Of a DNA stretch of 64,000 bases, positions 8,517 to 62,234 are shown one piece after another (position 1 is the stretch's first letter; each line of letters starts with the position of its first letter). Made by a program: the position numbers and the translations under genes. The notes beneath the pieces are model-generated. The model saw only the letters and a list, made by a program, of their open reading frames with translations, searched no databases and was not told the DNA's origin. The stretch is from Lepidodermella squamata (taxonomy: Eukaryota; Animalia; Gastrotricha): assembly GCA_047495785.1 (NCBI GenBank), contig JBLDXI010000007.1, forward strand, positions 310,001-374,000, given 5' to 3'.

Positions 8517-11162
8517 ATGAAGAATAGGCAGATAATGGCGATTGTTTCTCTCGTCGCCATTTTCCGAAGATGTCTCGCAGGTAGCATACGGTTTCCTCTG
8601 ATGATGTAGTTCGCATAGATTTGAAAACAGATTCGAATTTATGTGCGGCTGGCAGCCAACTTCAAATACCCGAAGAGGAAGAATTTTACGAACAATCGAA
8701 TTCGAGGTTCCCATCTGCCGAAGCCGGACTTCAAGTTGGCAATAATTATCAATTAAAATTTCGATAATTTAACTCATTTTACAGATTTTCACAAACTACA
8801 GAATAAACTGCTCAGGTTAGTAAAATCTTCGAGGAAAAATAGATCGGATTTTTTTGTTGATAGGAATTATCACGAAATGGCGACTGATGGCTCGAACTGC
8901 CAACATAACTGGTCTCCACCTAGCTGTTTTCAGATTCCTAAGCCCTCAATTTTTGAAGCTAGTCGGCGAAGTTTACTATAAGAAACACCCATCTGGAATT
9001 ATCGATAACACCCCTAGTTGGATTACTTTGACTTTAGACCAGCCTCTTCGAGTTGAGGCTGGTGACGTAATCGGTAAGAATTTTACGACTTCCACTGGGC
9101 ATTAATTTCAGCTTTAATTTTGGGAAGGAATGTTTTACGATAAATTTACGACCCCTTCAAGTGTGATAGCTGTTGCCTCGCGAGTTTCCGGCGCCAATAA
9201 CACGATCGCCCTTCTGCTAGACAAAAGCCACTTCAAGAACAACAGTTTGAATTTGGATGATGGCCAAAAATGCTTATATTTTTTACTCTGAATTATTTTA
9301 GAAATGGTTTCCATTGTTGGAATACCGTTAATCGCCCGAACCCCAGCTCTGGGCTTTGTTCTCGAGGGTGACATGGATTCGTTTATAACTTCAGCCCCAG
9401 GGCATTGCGTAGCGTCTCGAAATGTGGCTGTTCCCGAGGGCTTCGTCGAAGATGACCCGGGGAACTATCCATTCGTCGAAGCAGGACTGCAAGCAAGCTA
9501 TTAAATTCGCCAATCTGATGTCTATATTGTGACTTATTTTTTTCAGATTTTCGCAAACTTGCAAATTCCTTGCACTGGGTTTTTGAAGGAGTGGCGTTTT
9601 GTAGTTCGCCCACCGGTGATTTTCGGCCTTCATCTGGCTGTTTTTCGTAAACGCGGGTACAACGCCTTTGATCTTATCGGCGAGACTTTGATCGACTCGC
9701 GACTAAGCAACATTACAGATTTCACTTACGGTAACTGGCTATCATTCGTGGCAGATCCGCCGATAGCTGTGATGAAAGGCGATTTTATCGGCATTTACTA
9801 CGACCAACTTAAAACGCGGGACGTTGTCCTAACTATTCCTAGTCGCTTGCCAAATAGGCAAAACTTCGAACGCGGGAAAGCTTTCGTCTTCCTTGCTGAT
9901 AGGAAATCCTTACTCAATTATACAGGTTATTCCTATGTCTTGATATTTGAATTAATCTTTCATAAGAAATTTTAGCTTTAAATGCTGCGACCAGCTTGTC
10001 CCTCGAAAGGATTCCGGCTTTATCGGCGGTTATAGGCGATCTTAAGACCCCGGTTACAACAACCTTGGGGCCTCAAATCTGCGAATCGAATGCCACTGTC
10101 CCAAATGATTTTAGAGACGGCCTACCATCGTCGAACCTTTTTGACCTCTACGAAGCTGGTTTACAGGTCTAAAAATCACACAAATTTCCAAATTTATCGG
10201 TTAATTTTATGCGCAGGTATTCAACTACATGAGAATTCCTTGTAGTGGTGAGATAGGATTTTTGTTATTTCATCGCCTTAATTTCGGATTTTATCATCCA
10301 GGAAAAATAGTTGAATGGAATTTTGTGAGCAAATCTCGCGTTGTTTATGGTCTTCACCTGGCCGTTTTTCGTAAAAATGAATTCGACACAACATTGGAGT
10401 TGGTTGGTGAAACAGCGCTGAGCTACAACCCAAGTGAAGCTGATCCTAATACAAAGGCCTGGATTACGCTGGCAGCGGATCCGCCGATCAACGTTAGGGC
10501 AGGGGATTACATTGGCATGTATTACGATAAATTGGAGACCAGCGACGAATTTCTTACCATACCAAGCACGAGTTACAACCAAGTGCTTTCTGACGGCAAA
10601 AAAGCTACTACCTACGTATGGCTAACAGATAAAACTAGCTTGGATAGAAGTAAGGAATAGCAATTTAATTTTCAAATATTTTTCAAAAATTTATTTAATT
10701 TATTTTAGATTTTGTAGACACCCTAGATGCTATTCTTGTAACTCGAGCTGTAGCCCTAGCTGCGGTTGTTAGGGCAAAAGACAGCCAATCAGACATTTTA
10801 GTCTCGGCCGAAGAGGATGACATAATTCCTATAAGGACATATCCAAGCCATACAGAACCACATATTACGACCCGAATGACTACGTCAGTCGCGATTGTTA
10901 CTCTAGGTGGCGTAGCTGCTCCTAAAACCGATCGTAATTTTTCATGAATTAAAGTTCCTGGCTATATAGGTTTTATTTTCGTTTAGGATGTAGCACAAGG
11001 AGACCAAAGGCCTTATCGAAGTGTGACTCGTGGCGGTTCAAATTTTCCTACGATCCTCGCATGAATGCTTGCCGTTCGTTTTGGAGCTGTGAAACGTCAG
11101 ATTTCGGCTTCTCAACCCGCTCGGAATGCCTGAAAACTTGCGCCGAGGCTTCACGCTTCTAG
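8517..11162 (+). CDS. G3: secreted protein; 3x domain X, short linker, 1 degenerate Kunitz-like domain
   Basis: MKNRQIMAIVSLVAIFRRCLA (exon 8517-8580). Three EAGLQ/GLHLAVFR/GD.IG sets; 31-nt mini-exons; GC-AG intron 9493-9546; last exon CSTRRPKALSKCDSWRFKFSYDPRMNACRSFWSC..GFSTRSECLKTC*; AATAAA 11267-11272. Confidence 0.85.
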
Positions 11163-37871: not shown

Positions 37872-39146
37872 ATGACCAGTAATACCATAGCTCTTGTATT
37901 GAGTGTTTGTTTCGCGTTACTACAAGTCAACGCAGAAGCGGCTTGTCAAACGGGCGAAACTTATGTCCCAACTAAATTCGATCTAGATCGCACGCCAGTT
38001 GCGCCGCTTTTCGAGGCAAATTTTCAAATTTTCACCAATCGCAAGGTCGAATGCGACGGTATGTAACCACATGAAATTACCATTTTTTCTGAAATTTTAA
38101 TTTTTTACAGGAGTTGTTACTAAATTCGCATTCATTCCAAGAACTCGAAATGCGAATGGTCTTCACATTCTCGTTGTTCGGCCTAGGCCAAACAGCCGCT
38201 TTGTAGTTGTTGGCGAGGTTTACGTCAACGGGGTCGTTCTGTCACCCAGCGCTGTTAACAACTGGGTGTTCTACCCAGTTACTGAACCTATTCCAGTAAA
38301 ATCTGGCGATTATTTAGCCATTTTCTACGACAGCGTTGACACGCCAGTTGCGAGTCGTGTTATTACGTCAGAAGAGTCATCTTCAAGTGAATTCCCGACT
38401 TATTCGCTGCTATTAGACGCTTCTTCCGGTGTAAGAGTCGGGGGTGAGTGATTTTTCAATAATTTTCAAAAAATTTCCAAATTGTCAATTTTTAGTTGCC
38501 TTGAATGCGAATGAAACTTACGCGGAAAAGGTGTTCCGATACCCTTTCTTGACGGCAGTTTTGACCTATGTAAGGTTTCGTTTTTTTCAAGGAATTGAGT
38601 GATGATTTGTTTGTTTAGGACCCTCTATCAGCAACTCGAGGTAGGCCTACGGCTAGACCTGTCCCGAACGCTCCAGTAGGTGAAGCGACTACAACAACAA
38701 AGCAGCCGACGATTACTACAACTACAACCACGACTACTCCAACCCCAACGACAACAACCACGACAAAGAAGCCTGTACCGTTCCCTTATTTCGTCCCAAG
38801 TTACGGCCAAGTAGCAACGCTGGCGCCATTCCCAACCAACCCAACCGCGGCGCCAACTCCTATGAATCCTTACCTGATTAGACGGGCGCAAATTCCTGCC
38901 CGTGAGTCTTAGATTCAAGTTTTGAGAGAGTGTGTGTTAAATTTTTTTTATTTTCTAGGATGTGCAGATCAGGTGCCGTCGAATGTTGCCGGGTGCCGAC
39001 TTGGTACCCGCATTTACTTTGTACCACTTCGAGGCGTGTGCCGCGAGGAGTACGGCTGCCTCACGGAGACGACAAACAACTTCCGCACCCTGGACGAATG
39101 CGTCACCGTATGCGGTTCAATCTTAAGTGGCAACAACAAAAAATGA
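37872..39146 (+). CDS. G13: secreted protein; 1x domain X, Thr/Pro stalk, 1 variant Kunitz domain
   Basis: MTSNTIALVLSVCFALLQVNA; FEANFQIFTNRKVECDG; GLHILVVR; VKSGDYLA; Kunitz CADQVPSNVAGCRLGTRIYF..CREEYGC..NNFRTLDECVTVC. Confidence 0.85.
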
Positions 39147-49905: not shown

Positions 49906-52900
49906 ATGCGATCAAGTTTTTACCTGTTTGTCATATTCATGACTTTCGGCAGAAGGGCCCAAGCTACACAGTCTATAGGTAAGCTAGACCATCGTAGGTT
50001 TCTCAAAAAATTTAAATATTTTTTAAATAAAGAAACGGTTAAAGCTTGCTCGCTAAATGAGTCATCCGTCCCTTCTAACTACACCCGATATGAGGGAGCA
50101 AGGTATCCTTTTACGGAAGCCGCTCTTCAATTATACACACATCTTCAGGTATATGAAAACTATCTCTAATTTCCTAATTAATTTAATTTCAATTAATCAG
50201 GTTAGCTGTGATGGTCAACTCGTAGAATGGCAGTTTGCGACCCGAAATAAGTTGGTCTACGGCCTTCATCTTGGCGTTTTCCGCCTTAATACGGGCGAAG
50301 TTTACTCTCTAGTCAACTCGACCTACATCCGCCTTAATGCTGTCCGCAGTTCAAAGCCTGGCCCGCAGTGGGTCAGTTTTGTCCCAGCAGAGCCGTTCCC
50401 TGTCCGTAAGGGCGACATCCTCGGCATATTTTACGACAAATTTCGAACACCGAAAAAGTTACTAACCATCATAAACGCAGGTCCTCAAACCCGCGAGGAA
50501 AGGCCTAATACGTTTGTTTTCCCCGTTGGGTTGACTGAAATGCCGGCGACTTATCGCGATTTCGAAAGTTTGAAACTCCGCATTTCGAAAGCAACAGCCT
50601 TCGAGTACCGGGACCCGGCGTTAACTGCGATTATCAAGCATAACGTGGCTGTTCCTAGGTCGGCGAACAGGCCTGTCGCTGCCCCTGTAGCACCTCGAAA
50701 GCCAGTGCTGAGATCGACAAAATCTACAACCACTACCACTACTACTTCAGTAGCTACAAGATCTAGAAGGCTACGGAAGACGACTACAACTTCATCGACC
50801 ACTACTCAAGTACCTTACGAGTGTTCTGCTAAGGACGAAATCGTTAGCCCATTCGGCAAGTCGTTTGCCAGTATGAGCACGACAGCGTTTCCTTTCCTCG
50901 AATCTGGATTGCATGTCTTTCAAGAGTTGCGAGTACCATGCCGTGCTTATTTAGTCGAATGGACTTTTTTGATCCCGCAGCGGCATCGGATGGTCGATGA
51001 CCTCCACCTAGCCGTATTCCGACCGACTGATGCGATGAATACAGGGTTTAGAATCGTAGGTGCGACGCATATCCCGCCGCTTCCGCTAGATCGGTCTAAA
51101 TCTGGAGATTGGCTGTCATTTGTCCTCTCCCCGCAGCAACGGATTCTTGTGACGAAAGGCGATTATCTCGGCTTCTACTACACTCAGTTCAGCACAGTTT
51201 CAAAGGCGTTAACAATCCTTACCACGAATGAAGTTGGAAATTCGAATGCTACAACTTGGGTGTTTGAGTACGACAATAGGACCCTTTCAGCGGCTAGCGC
51301 TCGGGAAATAACGTTGAATGCTCAAAAAGCGGATAAAACCAAACGAAGGCCAGCTCTTATTGCCAAGTTGAGCTTTGATCTTCAATCAGCGACGGTACCT
51401 TCGAGTGATACGACTACGATGGAGCTGTCGATAAATTCGAGAGTTCCAGGCAGAAGGCGGCGGCCTACGTCGACATTGGAGCCTGTAACCTCACCCACCA
51501 CTACCCCAACGACTAAAACAACTACAATCAAAAAGATGACAACCCCAGAGCCGCAACATATGGTTAGGATTTAGCTTCTAATATAGATTATTTTAATTTC
51601 AATTTTGTTTAGAAATTTTTGAATGTCGTTGATAAAGGTAGAACGATCTGCAGCTTTTATCGAACGACTACGACGATTGTAGGCTTTTTTAAGGTGGCTC
51701 AAGACTAGGCATAAAGTTCGTTTTTTTCAGCTCGAGTTTAGTACGGAAGACGAATGCATTGACTTCGCTGGGGATAATCAAAAAGAGTGCAATGGTCTTG
51801 ATAACAGTTTTGGGGCCTGCGTTGCAACCTCAGCAGACTGCGGTCGAATCAAATCAACCCTGGTAACGCAATTATCTATCCCTATTAATATATATCTTTA
51901 TAATTTCCTATTTTTTAAAGTATGCACGGCACGATTCGAGCGGAGATTGTCAAAGCAGTGTCGACAGTTATTTCAATTCTTGCATCCATCGAAATGCGAA
52001 AACAGGCACTACGTACTGCGCCCCGCTTGTTCACGGGTCTTTGGGTTGCTTTGTCAACGAAGACATGTGCCAAAGGGCTGGCAACGCGTCCATACCTCCC
52101 CTCGAAAAGCCGCTGAAAGCTAAACCCCGAAGAAGTCGAATTATAACCGCGAATACCAATGTAAATTTAAGGATTTTCTAATAGGTAATTCCTAATTAAT
52201 AGAAAATTCTTATTCCAGGTCTATATGAATGTAATGGAGAAGGGAAAAACGATTTGCAGCTATCATCCTTCAGCAACCACCATAGTAGGCTATATTTCAA
52301 TTTTATGAAATTAAAAATGGCGGAATTTTTCCATTCAGTACACCTTCGCAACATTGGATAACTGTCTATTCTTTGTTGGGGTGAGTTTTCGATTTGGATT
52401 GGCCTTAATTTTTCCAAATTTTTTTGTTCATTGAAATAGAACAACACAAAGATGTGCGAAGAGGAGATATCTGGCCTAACAATTTGCGTTGATAAGAAAG
52501 CGGAATGCAGTTTGCTTCAATTGAAAACGGTAACGTGACTTGAAAATCCGGCAAAATTATCGATGATTTTAAATGAAATTTAGACTGAAATTTTTGATAC
52601 TTCGGAGGAATGTTATGCTGAAATCGATAGTTACCACAACTCGTGTTTGCACTCCGACGATGAAACTGGCGACATCTTCTGCTCCCCGGTGATGTATCAC
52701 GCAGAGGTAGCACCTATAGCCCTAAATTAATCACCCTTTTCCTAATTTTTCATTCAAGGTTTGCTACATCGACAATGCGGCTTGTTTGCTGGATAGACAA
52801 AGCCGGCTGATATCCGGAAATCGAGCAGCTGAATTGAATAAAACATCCCACAAGTCGTCTAAAAGATTGAAAACAGGCGAGACTGACCTTAGCAGTCAAG

Positions 52901-53641
52901 ATTTCCAAGCAACACAGATAACCTATTTAAACCTAATCTCTCGAGGAATAACTGTTTGCGAAGCTAAAAGTAGCAACGCGACCTTGGTAAGCTGAAGAAA
53001 AAAATTATTGAAATTTTGACCTCTCCTTTCGCAGACAACTTTTGCAGATCTCCAAAGCTGTTTAGACTTCTCTGGGGTATGTTCTTTTAGCATTCGTTTT
53101 TTTCTTGATTTTCTTGCCAATTTTATAGGACAACAGAAAAGTTTGCGGGGAAATAAATGGCGATTTCGGAGCTTGTGTTGACAGTAAAGCTGACTGTACG
53201 ATTATTGGTGCAATGCCGGTAAGATTTGACCCAGGTTAAATTTGAAAATTTTCAATTCTTTTTAATTTTTGTAGTTCCGAACTCATCCTACTAACACTGA
53301 TTGTGCTGCAGAGGTTGACAAGTATTACGTGAGTGAATGGTTTTGTTCGCCGTAAAATTTGACCCATTTTTTAATGAATAGGCCACGTGCATCCAGGTCA
53401 AGCCAGATGGCAAATGGTTCTGCTCAACAATGGCGAAAGACTCTATTGTATGTGTATCATCACAATTATTTACACAGATATTTTTTTCATCATAATGTAC
53501 CTATCTATCTTGCAGAGTTGTTATCAAAGCGATGTAACTTGCCAGGCTGCGTTCGAACAAGCGCATAACCGCAGCATGATGCATGGGAAAAGTCCGGCGA
53601 ATAGTCTATCATTTTTAACGGCATTTTTTCGGCACCGCTGA
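49906..53641 (+). CDS. G17: secreted protein; 2x domain X, Thr/Arg linkers, 3 tandem copies of a 10-Cys module
   Basis: MRSSFYLFVIFMTFGRRAQA; large exon 50201-51562; then a chain of small phase-0 exons (51613-53641) that splice into one open frame ending ..TAFFRHR*. Confidence 0.8.
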
Positions 53642-54175
53642 TGAGGGACGAAAAGTGGAATATTCAAACACCTGTTGTGATAAAGAAATGCTCGAAAACA
53701 TGCCGTATGTAAATACGTTTCGTGGCCGGAATAATTATTCTCTCAAAACTTTTGTACGAAAAACGCGTATATCTTTTCATAATCTTAATCGATTCATAAT
53801 CGTTGGAGAAAGCGGAAATTTTTCATTAAAACCAGCGTTGTTTTTGCTACTTGTGTTGCTGTTTTGTTTGTATAATCTTGTGGCAACGACGTGTTAAGAG
53901 CGGAGACACCAAGCTCGAGTCAGCCATTTTGATAGTACTAAGAAAGATTACACGGAAAATGATGAGGGTTTCAAGTGACAGCCGCAGAAAATATGCGTCG
54001 ACTGCGTATTTGTTTTTGAATTTCAGACGCGGCACCACTTAACAGCTTTAACAGACAATGCAGCGAGCCGGCAAAAAGCCCCGAAGCGCGCCACGCGACG
54101 CCACTCGCTCGCTCATCGCCGCCTTATCCATGTACAGGCCATTTTACACGCTACATTATTTCCGCCGCCGAAATC

Positions 54176-56261
54176 ATGCCGTATCAAGTTGAACTAATTT
54201 ACTGCATCCTGTTGCCGTTGCTAGGGCTGGTCTCTTTGATTAAAGGAGAAGTCTGCTCATCACCCGACGGCACCCTCGTGCCAAGGGAGTACAACCGCAC
54301 CATCGTCCTAGGCCGGCATCAATACATCGAGCCGTACCTGCAGATCTACACGAACCGCAAGGTTGAATGCGACGGATTTTTGTCCGAGTGGCAATTTGTG
54401 GCTCGCAATAAAATCGTCTACGCGCTTCATATGGCCGTTTTCCGCCAGGAGAACTCAACAGCGCTATTCCGCCTCATCAACTCGACCTTCATCCCGCTGA
54501 GCGCTGTTCGAAATTACAAGGGCCGCCCGACGTGGGTGAGCCACAAGCTCAGCGATCCGATCCCAGTTAAAACCGGCGACTATCTCGGCGTTTTCTACGA
54601 AAAATTAGACGTGCCTCAGAAGCTGTTGACAATCATTACCCGGTCGACTGGTAACGGCATTGAACCGAACAAAATTCAGAACACGTATTTGATCCCTACT
54701 AGTAATCAAAAGTTGAGCGCAGAATCAGCTGGGCCTAATTACGTTATTGATGTTAGAGCTGATAATACTTTGTTCGAAGATCGCGAACCTGCGTTATCTG
54801 CTATCATCTCACGGGTGAGAAGTGTTCGTAATGACGTAGTCGCTGGTCCGAAATCTCCGCTGGCGGAGGTTTTCCCATTCAGGCTGCTAGGCCCGGCTTT
54901 TGACAACGACCCAAGCCTTGGAACTCTTAGCGCTGGTACGGAAACTTGCTCACCCTCCTCCGGATCTTCGTTCGTCTCGGCTTTCAGAGGAATGAAGCTG
55001 GTTTTTGGTGACCATAGGTATTACCCATCTCTCGAAGCTGGAATGCACATCTTCGAAGAACTTCGAGTAGGTTCCCCCTTAAATTTAATATTCAAAATTA
55101 ATTGTTAAATTTGTTAGGTTCCATGCAAAGGATTTTTATTAGAATGGAACTTTCTAGCCCCAAGCACCGACCATCACTTTATGTACGGGTTGAACCTGGC
55201 AGTTTTCCGCCCGGTCGATAAATCAATGACAGCTTTCAGAGTCATTAATGAAACGAGGATCGGAGTTGCCCGCATCACGCCGACAATTGCCGGTAAATGG
55301 GTTGCCTACACCCTGCCGGCTGATAAACGCCTACCAGTTGAAGCTGGCGATTACCTAGGATTCTTTTACAATCAATTCAAAACTATGTCCCACTTCCTTA
55401 CCGTCGCGACAAGCAATGACGATCTCGGGAATAATTTCAGAACTTGGGTGTTCGAATACGATAAGAGGACAATCGAAAGTCCTATGTCAAATCGTAATTT
55501 AGTTTTTTTTACTCAAAATTCAAGTTGTTATATCGATTTTTAGGGACGGTTTACTCTAAAGAGGCAATCAAAACCCGCCGCCGGCCGGCTTTAGCTGCCA
55601 AGGTTGGATTGCCGAGTGGGGGCCGAACCGACCTGGTCTCCATCGAGACCACGAAGGTGCCTGAAATAACCAGCATGCGGACGGTTAGAACATCGACGAC
55701 AACGGCTGGTACGACCACGGTCACTAAAATGACAACGACCCGAACCCGCATCCGGTTGAACGTGATTGGCTCTGGAAAAACGACATGCACCGCCTCGAGA
55801 ACCAACACTTCAATCGTGAGTGCATTGAAATTATTCGAAAAATTCAATAATTTATTTAAAAATTTCAAATAGTTCGAGTTCGAAAATCCTGAACAGTGCA
55901 AAATTTTCACTGGTGACAATAGACGTGAGTGCAAAATTGAAGCGGCTGCGGATGGCAGTGGCTACGGCATTTGTGTATCCACCCTGGCTGATTGCGAGAG
56001 AATAGGCGGCGAGAATGTGAAATTGCACCGCGTCGCCACGCTTTGTTACGCTGTTGTTAACCGCAATTACGTAAGAATCCAGCTTAAAAAAATTACAATT
56101 TTGCTGACTCATTTTATATTTTGCAGAGATCATGCCTTCATGAAGATGCTGAACAACAAATGTACTGCTCACCTGTCTCGGCTAAATCTCTACGCTGCTT
56201 CCCGAAAAACTCTGAATGTCAAGAATTTATCAATAATAACTTTTATGCTTATGATACTTGA
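54176..56261 (+). CDS. G18: secreted protein; 2x domain X, Thr linker, 1x 10-Cys module
   Basis: MPYQVELIYCILLPLLGLVSLIKG; EPYLQIYTNRKVECDG; EAGMHIFEELR|VPCKG; module LNVIGSGKTTC..FENPEQCKIFTGDNRREC..CFPKNSEC; TGA 56259-56261. Confidence 0.85.
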
Positions 56262-56583
56262 TATTATATATATTAAAAATTTAATAATTATAATAAATGT
56301 GCAAAAACGTCTTTAAATGGTTACAAAGTGTTTTTATCGTCAAGTCTCATTGAGGTAAAAAAAAAGACGAACACTTGGCTGGCTGGCTTCTTTGAGATGA
56401 AATGTTCTAATTTTGTGCCGGCGGCCGAATTTTCACGCGTCCCATTGTTTTAGGTAAGCATGCCTTTTGTGTACCCGTCGTTAGCAAGAGCTTCCTGCTC
56501 GATTGTTATCAAAACTGCAAACAACATCATTTATGACCGAGTCGGGTATGCGCAACATAAGCGCATAGCACGGCCTCAAAAAT

Positions 56584-59500
56584 ATGACGAGAGACTTTCG
56601 GATTATCTGGCTATTTTTAGCCTCATGTCTAGCCATCAATGCTCAAGATTTAGGTAATTTTCCTATCACGGAAATTTACCAATAATTTTCAATTTCGTTT
56701 CAGACGAAACGTGCCCCCGAAGTGGCACCCTAGTTCCCCCTGCGGGCCTTTTCGAGCCGAAATTTTATAAAATATCCGACGCTGGTCTTCAAATATTCAC
56801 CAATCGAAGAGTTATTGCTATTTACATCTGCGTAGGAATTTTTTGTAATTTTATGCCTTTCAGATTCCTTGCGATGGCGATTTGAATGAATGGAAATTTG
56901 TGGTAGAAAAAAACTTCACGTATCGCTTGTATCTGGCCGTATTTCGGGCGATGGATATCCTGCCGAGCGGCGAGATCGCTAAGTTTCGACTTGTTGGCCA
57001 GACGAATCTTTCGGCTATCACCGCCATAAAAATTCCACAGCCTTCAAATGAAACAAAATTTTGGACAAATTTCTACCCGAAAATTCTTATACCTGTCAGA
57101 CAAGGAGATTACCTCGGCATTTACTACCAAAAATTCAGCTCAAGCCATAAATTGTTGACCATTTTGAATGCGCGGATGAAACGAGAGGCCACTCGCGATT
57201 GCGCTCGAAAAGGCGTTACTTACGTATGGCAAGCCGATGCAAATGATACGAGCATCAATGAGCCCGCTTTAGTTTCTGCATCGTGTGAATTTCGCGAGCC
57301 TGCTCTTGCTGCTATCATTAGGTTTTTTTACTTATAAGCTTTCCGAAATGTTTTACATGGGGTATTTGTTGAATAGTGGGGTTCCAGTGGTAAAAACACG
57401 TGCCCCTCCGACAATTCCCACAACATCTACTACGACAACTACGACGACTTCCACGCCAACAACTACTACTACAACAAGAACAACAACTACAACGACCCCT
57501 CCAACAACTCCTCCGGAATACACCACGTTCGTTTCATAGTGAAGTTATTCGAATATCGAATAGCAGGATCCTGAATGAAAGCCAATGATTGATCAGAAAC
57601 AAAAACGGATGAAAATTCGGGTTCTTAGCTTGTGAAATCCCCTCAATTAGGGCCCTGAGAAGGACTGGGGAATGTTAATTAATTAATTTTAACATTTTTC
57701 CAGTAGATGTGTTTCGTTGTTACAGGAATTTTTTAATATGAAATTCGCTTTTTCAAAATGTTATTAGTCCAACGAATTAATTTATTGACCTTTTTACTAT
57801 GATATAGAGATGTAAATGGGAATGCTGTGTCAACCCGTACACCAAGACTGCCGAGGACGACTACTACTACGACCACTTCTACGACAACGACGACTACGAC
57901 TACAGAAACAATGTCAACAACAACCAGGCGTAAGAGTCATTTTTCAAATGTCTTCTATTATTTTGTGACACGAGATTGTTCTGTCAGCTAAATGTTCAGA
58001 AAAAGATAGCTTGATTGATCCGTTGGATAAAGAATCGCAAGATCAGTGGCAAAATCCGTCTTACTTCAAGTTTCGCGAGGGCGGCCTTCAAATTTTCAAC
58101 AAGTTGAAGGTTCCTTGTAACGGCTATTTGGTCGAGTGGATATTTTTGATACCTAAAAACCTCGAGGTTATCTCCAATTTAACGCTTGCCGCTTTTCGCC
58201 TCAATCAAACTTCAATGGAATTCGAAGTCGTCGGCTCAAATCCCTTGCCTTACATTGCCTTGAAAGTCGCTAAAACTGACAAATTTGCAGGGCTCGTTAC
58301 TTATAGCCTTCCAAGGCAGAAGCAATTCTACGTTGAAAAAGATGACCTCCTCGGTAAGAAATATTATAATAGAGACATTCGAGCATATGCCTCCTATTTT
58401 TTTTGATCAGGCTATTATTACGATCGATTCGCTTCCAATCTTTTCAATCTTTCTATCATATCGAACCCAGCGCGTGATCGAAGCGAGGCGTCAAAGACTT
58501 GGGTCTTCCAATTAGGCGCTAAGGAGTTGAATGAACAAAACAGTTACGAACCACTTTAAACTGGGACACTGAATTTGAACTATATTTACTCCAGGAACCC
58601 TGCCGTTAAGTGACGCTATTGAATCGTTCCGGTTGCCAGCATTGCGTGCGAAAGTTAACATTGAGCCTAGGTATAAGACGTGTCCCTATACAGCTATAAT
58701 CATCAAAAATGATTGAAATTTCAAAAAGGGTGACTCGGCCGGTCAGGTCGACTACCACGGCAACCCCAACGACAACAACCCCAGACATTTTTGCGCCAGT
58801 AACCAAGTTCCGCCGCACGACGTTTTGGCCAACAATACCAGGTGTAACCCCACCAAGAACGACCCTGCCTCCAGATGCGGTTTATTTCAACGTGTTGGCT
58901 CGCGGCCAAGCAGAATGTGGCTTCACCCAGGACAGCTCGACCTTGGTTGAATATTACTTTTGACAGCAAAATTCTTATACATATTTTTTCAGGTTGCTTT
59001 TGACACTGCTGAGCAATGCCAGAAATTCATCGGGGTGAGTTTTTCATAAAATCATAGTTAGCTCTCACTTTACATTTACTTGACGGAATAGAATCAAAAG
59101 TATCAGTGCAGAGGTCCACGAAGTGTATTCAGCGTTTGCGTTGACTTTACGGCTGATTGCTCATTCCTGATGGAGGGAGCCGAAGTGGTTAGTTTGAAAT
59201 TAACAATTTTGCCGTTCCCAAGTCAAATTTTCATCTTACAGAATAAAAATTACAAAAACTCGTCGGAATGCTTCACAGACATAGCTGCGAGTCAGGTAAA
59301 TTTACCTTATTTCTACGCATTAATTATTAACATGAGAATTTATCTATATCATAACAGCCGACTTGTCTTCATATCAGCAATACTGTGAGCATTTTACAAC
59401 CGCAATTTTACTGATGTTATAAGTTGAAATTTTCTCAGGGTCAAAAATTCTGCTCAACACTGAAAACGACTGCTCTGGTAATAACAATTTAGATATCTTT

Positions 59501-59628
59501 TTAACTTAATGACTCGATTCGAATGCATTTATCAGGCTTGCTACGCTAGCTATAGAATGTGTCAGCGTGCCGTCACCGGAATCCGAATGTCAGCGAAAGC
59601 AGCAAGCTCTTTCATAAAAATAGCTTGA
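56584..59628 (+). CDS. G19: secreted protein; 2x domain X separated by Thr tracts, 1x 10-Cys module
   Basis: MTRDFRIIWLFLASCLAINA; DAGLQIFTNRR|IPCDG; EGGLQIFNKLKVPCNG; module over 7 exons including a 27-nt exon PTCLHISNT; TGA 59626-59628. Confidence 0.8.
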
Positions 59629-59782
59629 AACAGCGCACTTGAAGCCACTTTTGTGCGGGAAAATTATCATTATTTACATAAGCATATAATCGCTTTGTTA
59701 TAATTATTGAGAAATAAAGAAGCTTTTTCATATACTCGGAAGTGGAATATCTTGAAAGAAGAGCAGTTTTAATTTTGTGAAC

Positions 59783-62234
59783 ATGCAGGTGCTAATAGGC
59801 TTATTAGCCTTGATGCTGACTTTTGGCAGGCGAGCCTCAAGTTTTGACTGCCCTGTTGAGTCATCTCCCGTGCCTACGACAGGCCGCCAGTTACCGTCCC
59901 TCTACCCACTGACCGAGACCACGCTCAACATTTACACCCATCTATCAATTGGATGTAATGGCTTCATCAATGAATGGCAATTGGCGGCTCAAAACCAGGC
60001 TGTTTTCGCGTTGAATCTCGCGATTTTTAGAATATCACAACGAGCGGCTGACGGGCGACCTTCAGCGTTCAAATTGATCAATATGACTCACCTCGACCTA
60101 ACAGTCATCTATGAATACAAAACTCAGCCGTTATGGGTTAGATATTACCCGAAATCGCCTATTCCCGTTATGGAAGGGGACATTATCGGTAGGTTAAGGG
60201 TTCAACAACGTAACGAATTGTCAGCAAATTTATTAATATAGGCACGTTTTACGATCGAACCAGAATACCTGTAAAGCTGCTGACCATCAAAACGCGAAAA
60301 GCTCCAACCCCACCCACTGCTTTTTTTGTTCCGAATACTTTCATTTTGAAAATGACTGCCAAAGATTTCGGTGAGTCTATCGCGTGAAAATATGTTTGAT
60401 TTTTATTGTTTTTTTCTGAAAGCTGATAATGAAACAATCGATCTAAATGAACGCAGCTATTTGTTTGAATATCGAGATGTCGCGCTAGTTGCTTTCGTCA
60501 GCGGTAACAAGAAAAGGCTCATTCGTTCGACAACTACAACTACAACGACATCAACTACTACAACCGAACCAACTCCAAGAAGGCCGGGTTTCCCCCAAAC
60601 CACGTTGAATAATACCACTACATTTCCAACTAACAGCAGAGGTATGAATCGCCCCCGAAAATTCAGAGAAAATTCCTGTATCATTTCTGTAATAGTGGTT
60701 GACTGTTCCAATGATGATAGCTACGTCTGGGCTGGCGAGGGGACCTTCCCGTTTGATGCCGATAATTTCGTGAAGACCCAGTACAACCTGTACGAAGCTG
60801 GCCTGCAGATTTTTGAAGAGCTACGAGTTTCATGCCGCGGTTATTTAGTTGAATGGGACTTTCTATCGCCACCAATCAAACAAAAAACGATTCATAACCT
60901 GACATTAGGCGTGTTTCGCCTTTCACCTACCGATAGCTCGGTTTTCCGATTGGTTGGATCGACTAAAATTACGTCACTCACTGTCCCTCCGCATTTGATT
61001 GACCGATGGGTGGCGTTACCTTTGGCACCGCGGCAACAAATTGCTGTGGAACCTGGAGATTACTTGGGTAACATACAGGATGATTGCTGATTACTGAATA
61101 TTTACGATGTTTTTTCCAGGATTTTATTACAATCGCTTCGATACAACTGCGGAGAATCTGACTATCAGGACTAGCGTCAGTGTTGATAAAACTTACCCAA
61201 CGTGGGTTTTCGAGAGTGACGCAACGCAACTGAACAAATCCAATTGTAAGAACATTTCCTTTATCATTTTTTAGTGATTTTATCCTGTTTTGTTTCAGTG
61301 ACTATATCAAAAAAAGACGCTGGAAAGGTTTATCGTCGACCGGCATTGCTGGCTAAAATTAACAGGGAAAATCGGTTGTCGACTCCCAAGCCTACAACGC
61401 CTAGTGATGGTATTTTCACCTTCCCGCCTGACTTCGATCCGAACAAAATCAAAGACACGACTGAAGTAAAGTTCCACGGCAATTTCCTCAGAATTTTGAG
61501 CCGTGGGAATTCGGAATGTTCTTTCACTCGAGACAGCGCGGCTCTGGTGAGAAAATTACTGTTATCCTAATACGGCTTTTTAATTATCGCCTTCATAGCT
61601 TGAGTTTGACAACAACAAGGACTGTACCAATTTTGTTGGGGTATGGCTTTCATATTTTCGCTGAATTTATTTTGTCTATAAGCATTGAAATTGAAGAATA
61701 AGTTGAAGCTCTGCATTCATCCGACCAAGGTCTTCGCAGTTTGTGTTAACAGTGCTTCTAACTGTTCTGTCATCGGGGCGAGAACGGTACAGTATATTTT
61801 TTAGCTGCAACAGAAAGTTTACAGGTTGCAACTTCAAATAGATCGAAGTCTTCGATGAATTTCGTGAATGCCTTGATCAAGTTGAAAAGTATCAGGTAAT
61901 TTTGCAAAATGTTTATTTTTATATTGCATCAATTTTTGACATTTCAGTCCACATGTATTCACGTGGATCAATGGGTATGATCTGCTTTATTATTTGGGGA
62001 TTTATTCATTTAATTTTTATTATAAGGGTGAACGATTTTGCTCTACTTTTCGATCTCCTGCTACATTGGTAAGCTAAACTGTGAATCCAAGCGATAGGTC
62101 TATATTTTTTTATGGTATTTCAGGGCTGCTTCTCCAATGACTACCAGTGTCAGAAAGCTACTTTGAGAACGCTTCAGTTCGATTCAACAAGAGATCGTCC
62201 TGTTCTGAAGCTGGCCCGTTTCGCTAAAACTTGA
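59783..62234 (+). CDS. G20: secreted protein; 2x domain X, Thr linker, 1x 10-Cys module; same module exon structure as G19
   Basis: MQVLIGLLALMLTFGRRASS; ETTLNIYTHLSIGCNG; EAGLQIFEELRVSCRG; module LRILSRGNSEC..CFSNDYQC with 27-nt exon STCIHVDQW; TGA 62232-62234. Confidence 0.8.

Follow-up and report, generated by a model that had tools for sequence, protein, structure and literature searches.

Lineage-specific cysteine-rich modules are common in invertebrates, and the nematode ShK/SXC, ET, DB and Lustrin_cystein domains are lineage-restricted examples of such modules in invertebrate secreted proteins. Here we describe a ten-cysteine module encoded at the end of four neighbouring genes (G17 to G20) in a stretch of 64,000 nucleotides (nt) from the gastrotrich Lepidodermella squamata (GenBank assembly GCA_047495785.1, contig JBLDXI010000007.1, positions 310,001 to 374,000 of the forward strand; hereafter "the window", i.e., the whole stretch analysed, to whose positions coordinates refer unless a contig is named). 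A heterozygosity of 2.99% is on record for this animal in a study that did not analyse gene families (PMC11660948). The module forms a domain family that is new, although its general type is familiar, and it probably represents an undescribed extracellular domain of ~112–118 residues with ten invariant cysteines (Cys), C-terminal in the secreted, mucin-like G17 to G20 proteins, locked by disulfides and used for binding or anchoring.

Broadly, the module resembles the ShK/SXC, ET, DB and Lustrin_cystein domains in its predicted extracellular location, invariant Cys, variable surface, tandem repeats and expanded gene cluster, but it differs from them in Cys number and spacing, and none of these domains was matched in Pfam at E ≤ 10 on the pieces scanned. 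Kunitz/BPTI domains (PF00014), which stand C-terminally in neighbouring genes of the same cluster, are likewise small, secreted and disulfide-rich; however, a Kunitz domain has 6 Cys (spacing 8-15-7-12-3) on one phase-1 exon, whereas the module has 10 Cys (17-10-9-6-16-10-10-9-6) on phase-0 exons. A third likeness is to the twin Cx9C (CHCH) domains, through the C-x9/10-C spacing of the module and weak matches to Ndufs5, COX6B and CX9C, although CHCH domains are intracellular helix-turn-helix structures of the mitochondrial intermembrane space and the module follows a signal peptide.

Six copies of a ten-cysteine module

The window is eukaryotic; its introns are 48–68 nt long and have T-rich acceptors. 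It holds six copies of the module, three in G17 and one each in G18, G19 and G20, and each has exactly 10 Cys in a common spacing of 17-10-9(13)-6-16(17)-10-10/11-9/10-6. All six fit the residue pattern given in a preliminary description of this DNA, and they lie where that description had placed them, the peptides of the first G17 repeat translating exactly from 51616–51678, 51731–51862 and 51921–52160. The shared Cys count, pattern and spacing are far beyond chance. The module was also said to be invisible in the track of open reading frames (ORFs), and its mini-exons of 27–132 nt are indeed absent from the ORF list. Within a cluster of ~20 genes (the count of the preliminary description), it is confined to the last four, as follows:

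49906 to 53641, plus strand: gene G17, with a signal exon, two copies of a domain X, a Thr/Pro-rich linker, three ten-Cys modules and a stop codon
51613 to 52073, plus strand: G17 module 1, with 10 Cys, in three exons (51613–51678, 51731–51862, 51921–52160), the module ending near 52073
52219 to 52791, plus strand: G17 module 2, in five exons (52219–52284, 52339–52380, 52440–52529, 52584–52706 and one that begins at 52759)
52918 to 53548, plus strand: G17 module 3, opening in the last stretch of exon 52759–52986 and continuing in exons 53035–53076, 53129–53218, 53275–53328, 53382–53447 and 53516–53638, with the stop codon at 53639–53641
55750 to 56222, plus strand: G18 module, in three exons (one ending at 55815, 55873–56070, 56127–56258), with the stop codon at 56259–56261
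58880 to 59568, plus strand: G19 module, divergent, in exons 58880–58945, 58993–59034, 59092–59184, 59242–59295, one from 59378 with an uncertain end, 59439–59477 and 59536–59625
61481 to 62156, plus strand: G20 module, in seven exons (one ending at 61546, 61599–61640, 61697–61786, 61842–61895, 61948–61974, 62027–62068, 62124–62231)

The G17 gene opens with an ATG at 49906 in a hydrophobic signal exon of 73 nt that ends in phase 1, and its ORF at 50057–51574 carries the beta-rich domain X twice. Between 51613 and 53641 lie 13 exons, all of them flanked by AG and GT and made up of complete codons, and all 12 introns between them (51679 to 53515) are GT..AG, in phase 0 and 48–68 nt long. The module junctions of G18 and G20 are likewise all GT..AG and phase 0. 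In G19, the exon with the seventh Cys (C7, in a numbering from C1 to C10), which starts at 59378, reaches a TAA stop without an in-phase GT donor, and the spliced reading put an X there. A GC donor after 59401 combined with the AG at 59438 would give an intron of 37 nt and the usual C7–C8 spacing in G19; this junction may thus reflect a short GC-AG intron or, alternatively, early decay of G19.

The phase-0 introns reported inside the module are hence found throughout G17, G18 and G20, while G19 keeps one non-canonical junction. Flanking junctions had been described as phase 1, which is the case for the signal exon and for the two Kunitz terminal exons checked. The latter (10980–11150 and 38952–39122) start in phase 1 (ag/GA TGT...) and end a few codons past the last Cys. 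The phases themselves were therefore read correctly, but the separate origin that they were taken to indicate follows only weakly from them, since the junction ahead of the module is itself phase 0 (in G17, donor after 51562 and acceptor before 51613) or absent.

Relatives on metagenome contigs

A homologue search with the G17 N-terminal ORF, in which candidates were swamped by Thr-rich words, yielded a single protein (P0001, 35% identity), located on a metagenome contig of 10 kb (L001); the G18 N-terminal ORF gave no match as a query. On L001, a Kunitz-bearing ORF comes first, followed by a gene-sized ORF (432 residues) and by a gene that has domain X twice and four modules. The last of these modules is truncated at the contig end, ahead of C9 and C10. 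In the window, too, Kunitz exons are located upstream of G16 and G17. Overall, the layout of L001:2348–10276 is the same as that of the window at ~44–54 kb, but with four modules vs. three. A second relative (P0003), retrieved by profile search, carries one module, located at its end and split over three exons (contigs L002–L005).

Eight complete copies from two organisms form a near-gapless alignment with 23–42% identity, in which the scaffold of 10 Cys is invariant and other positions vary, and an alignment of ten copies, one of them the truncated L001 module 4, likewise shows no Cys replaced. Intron positions are common to the copies, with the introns themselves present or absent copy by copy; since L001 module 3 has C2 to C10 in a single exon (L001:9425–9721), individual copies have lost or gained introns. 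The nearest relatives of G17 modules 1, 2 and 3 are L001 modules 2, 3 and 4, respectively (40–42% identity), so that, judging from these sequences, the tandem array seems to predate the split of the two organisms.

A profile hidden Markov model (HMM) was built from the L001 and L002 copies only and searched against 3229 six-frame fragments of the window. It matched the G17, G18 and G20 exons in the correct order (E 1e-13 to 1e-4; 2e-4, 1e-12 and 1e-12 for the exons of G17 module 1) and the G19 exons weakly, and no other window fragment fell below E ~4. Profile searches, proposed in the preliminary description as a check, thus support the module as a real family without a match to a known one. 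The module is real and conserved in other organisms, and its range, as far as public data were searched, comprises this animal and two or so metagenome relatives.

Haplotype variation and transcript data

The DNA run X2, dating from 2024, contains the stretch (0.96 of sampled words) as two haplotypes. Among the differences listed, which are a sample (at least 42 further differences exist), 18 of 19 exon single-nucleotide polymorphisms (SNPs) are synonymous, the other changing Ser to Ala. Module exons account for 11 of these SNPs, all synonymous: three in G17 module 2 (52773, 52776 and 52779) and eight in the G18 module, including two TGC/TGT changes at Cys codons. The 10 indels listed all fall outside exons (eight in predicted introns, two just past a stop). 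This synonymous bias, together with the position of the indels, argues for the exon map as well as for purifying selection, under which the module evolves. More generally, the second X2 haplotype at 52530–56270 is a useful check on gene models of this genome.

These data bear on the view that takes the exons for open frames arisen by chance or for pseudo-exons in decay, which we consider extremely improbable. The one G19 junction without a canonical donor and the weak HMM scores of G19 are what would be expected under it, but the Cys are invariant across organisms, module variation among the differences listed is synonymous only, and all other junctions are canonical and in phase. It is thus contradicted for G17, G18 and G20, and G19 alone remains.

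The run X1, from 2015, acts like an amplified complementary DNA library whose loose ends contain a SMART-type primer. It includes one true GT..AG joint (55493/55544), located in G18 upstream of the module and showing that this gene is spliced, and the short contigs of the run extend over the G18 module exons (55868–56269) and, weakly, over G17 at 51636–52003. Its numerous "opposite strands" joints, ~75–165 nt apart (51148–56084), look like palindromic library chimeras and not biology. A candidate poly(A) site at 56263 was rejected, as the primer-like loose end has the wrong orientation.

Searches for a known family or fold

To assign a Pfam family, we required an hmmscan score at or above the gathering cut-off of the family, with scans reported to E ≤ 10; the Cys-rich families considered included EGF, TIL, WAP, ShK, Kazal, CBM_14, Lustrin_cystein and PTN_MK. 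The 99-residue L001 copy covering C2–C10 returned no family at E ≤ 10, and the 13 exon pieces returned seven sub-threshold families (among them Ndufs5, PTN_MK_N, fn2, COX6B and CX9C), every one confined to one piece and none reaching its gathering cut-off. Of the MAFFT alignments of exon pieces, A2 (94 positions, checked with hmmbuild) and A7 were usable; the others (A1, A3–A6 and A8–A10) were wrong, with the halves of the module slid onto each other. Across the modules (51613–62156), Cys recur about every 10 residues, often after an acidic or small residue, and this periodicity leads fragment alignments to slide and accounts for the weak matches to Cx9C families. From 1.84 billion representative proteins, the A2 profile retrieved just two ORF fragments of metagenome origin plus a repeat protein as a spurious match, and a single match, beta-defensin 106 (E 0.37), from all PDB sequences. 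Likewise, a feature search of the ESM Atlas gave no usable match, and no account of a ten-Cys domain of this kind turned up in the literature searched. The mismatch to known Cys-rich families, first noted from the letters of the window, is therefore borne out in the Pfam, PDB, protein-profile and structure searches run, the last of these for the first half of the module.

As for the two named families, Foldseek rows to BPTI had E ~7 and TM ≤ 0.26, and with its other Cys spacing and no Pfam match the module is not a Kunitz/BPTI domain; in this cluster the two domains serve as alternatives at the C-terminus. Membership in CHCH is likewise contradicted by the sub-threshold scores of the matches, by the signal peptide, and by the prediction of C3 and C4 in the strands of a beta-hairpin. 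For fold membership, we required a Foldseek E ≤ 0.001, or a VIA Z clearly above background, over most of the domain; the best structural rows were MbtH-like proteins.

AlphaFold2 was run twice (on A2 and A7), the modelled region excluding exon 1 (C1). Both runs agree in predicting strands at residues 17–21 and 26–30 (the hairpin with C3 and C4), a short helix at 36–39 (C5), a strand at 42–46, a long helix at 50–60 (C6) and strands at 63–67 and 75–79, with a pLDDT of 78–91 for residues 12–60. A recurrent x6-C motif had been described as helix-like and as an echo of the Kunitz C-terminus. This likeness is not supported, as the probability of a profile–profile match (hhalign, module against a profile of five window Kunitz domains) is 0.4%, and C3 and C4 are in strands, not helices, in the models.

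A rival reading takes the module not as one new domain but as a composite, i.e., an internal duplication of a smaller unit of 4 or 5 Cys. Helix-strand-strand occurs twice in the models, the spacing C2-10-C3-9-C4-6-C5 recurs as C7-10-C8-9-C9-6-C10, and in some copies C2 lies alone on one exon while C3–C5 share another. MAFFT also repeatedly slid first-half pieces onto second-half pieces, but it did so in three different registers, and its signal may be just the ~10-residue Cys periodicity. When the first half was compared with the second by hhalign, the probability was 16% (P 0.0017) in yet another register, with little beyond the Cys matching between halves. Internal duplication is thus possible, if rather unlikely.

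Proposed organization and role of the module

The proteins bear a signal peptide and end in the module, which follows a Thr/Pro-rich stalk. The signal exon, two copies of domain X and Thr/Pro-rich linker upstream in G17 make the modules the C-terminal part of secreted, mucin-like proteins; a glycosylphosphatidylinositol (GPI) anchor or membrane tail was ruled out by the C-terminal sequences. The protein would accordingly read as a signal peptide, two domain X units, a mucin-like Thr/Pro-rich stalk, and then one to three modules, the module standing in the position of the terminal Kunitz exon of other window genes. Because the Cys count is an even number and no Cys is missing from single-module proteins, five disulfides are expected to form inside each module and would lock a small alpha/beta fold, the first half of which is predicted to comprise a beta-hairpin, a short helix, a strand and a long helix. 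Invariant non-Cys residues suggestive of catalysis are lacking among the aligned copies. It is tempting to speculate, with lower confidence, that the module is without a catalytic role and serves as a stable binding or anchoring head on a glycosylated stalk. Such a head would combine a fixed scaffold with a variable surface.

As to the rest of these proteins, domain X (50057–51574 in G17, and 54176–55108) comes in two beta-rich copies per gene, and has no Pfam match and no homologues beyond P0001. The low-scoring leads are CBM_17_28 (E 0.019) and a cluster in the Atlas (score 0.85) made up in part of F5_F8_type_C, which hint weakly at carbohydrate-binding beta-sandwiches.

Several points weigh against the reading of the module as an undescribed, disulfide-locked binding or anchoring domain. 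The Pfam queries were contiguous pieces, the longest of which (C2–C10 of a relative) is shorter than the full spliced module. The C7–C10 part of the AlphaFold2 models has a pLDDT < 50, and the absence of a known-fold match from Foldseek, VIA-align and the ESM Atlas is a fair test for the first half of the module alone. None of the X1 contig joints shown spans a module intron, so that the mini-exons are presumably, rather than visibly, joined in transcripts. Finally, the role in binding or anchoring is putative and backed by no homologue, and multibasic linkers between modules might mean that the modules are cut loose and not displayed on the stalk.

The limits of the searches leave some room for the reading that the module belongs to a known disulfide-rich family but has diverged so far that it was missed, given the short queries, the few sequences in the family profile and a model of which half is unreliable. 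The candidates for such a family are one-off weak matches (PTN_MK_N at 0.017, fn2 at 0.029, beta-defensin 106 at 0.37 and BPTI at a Foldseek E of ~7), and we regard a missed family as improbable.

The linkers, in turn, could fit a polyprotein from which proprotein-convertase cleavage would free the modules as ~12-kDa peptides acting as soluble effectors (inhibitors or antimicrobials). Motifs resembling proprotein-convertase sites occur between G17 modules 1 and 2 (RRSR, 52074–52160), between G17 modules 2 and 3 (KR, 52792–52917) and between L001 modules 3 and 4 (RRRR, L001:9713–9775), and the module is C-terminal like the Kunitz inhibitor domains of other window genes. However, the other L001 linkers are long Thr-rich stalks without multibasic motifs, G18 to G20 each have a single module with no site ahead of it, and no similarity to inhibitor or antimicrobial families emerged in the searches run. 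Release of the modules as peptides hence appears quite improbable, somewhat more so than a missed known family.

With the module read as an undescribed domain of secreted, mucin-like proteins, its origin can be proposed more tentatively. It is plausible, though short of probable, that this is a phylum-restricted domain with a new disulfide-stabilised fold, which arose in this lineage, perhaps by the doubling of a 5-Cys half, and spread by duplication of phase-0 exons as an interchangeable C-terminal binding head of secreted, mucin-like proteins.

By itself the module settles no open question, but with it a clearly delimited domain family under selection becomes known from an animal lineage that has hardly been studied. 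It also illustrates how gene calling that is ORF-based or prokaryote-style misses the modular content of secreted proteins when this is cut into exons of 27–132 nt. If the fold is new, the module would offer a compact scaffold of five disulfides with a possible use in protein engineering, and it would help in asking how extracellular domains arise and get shuffled.
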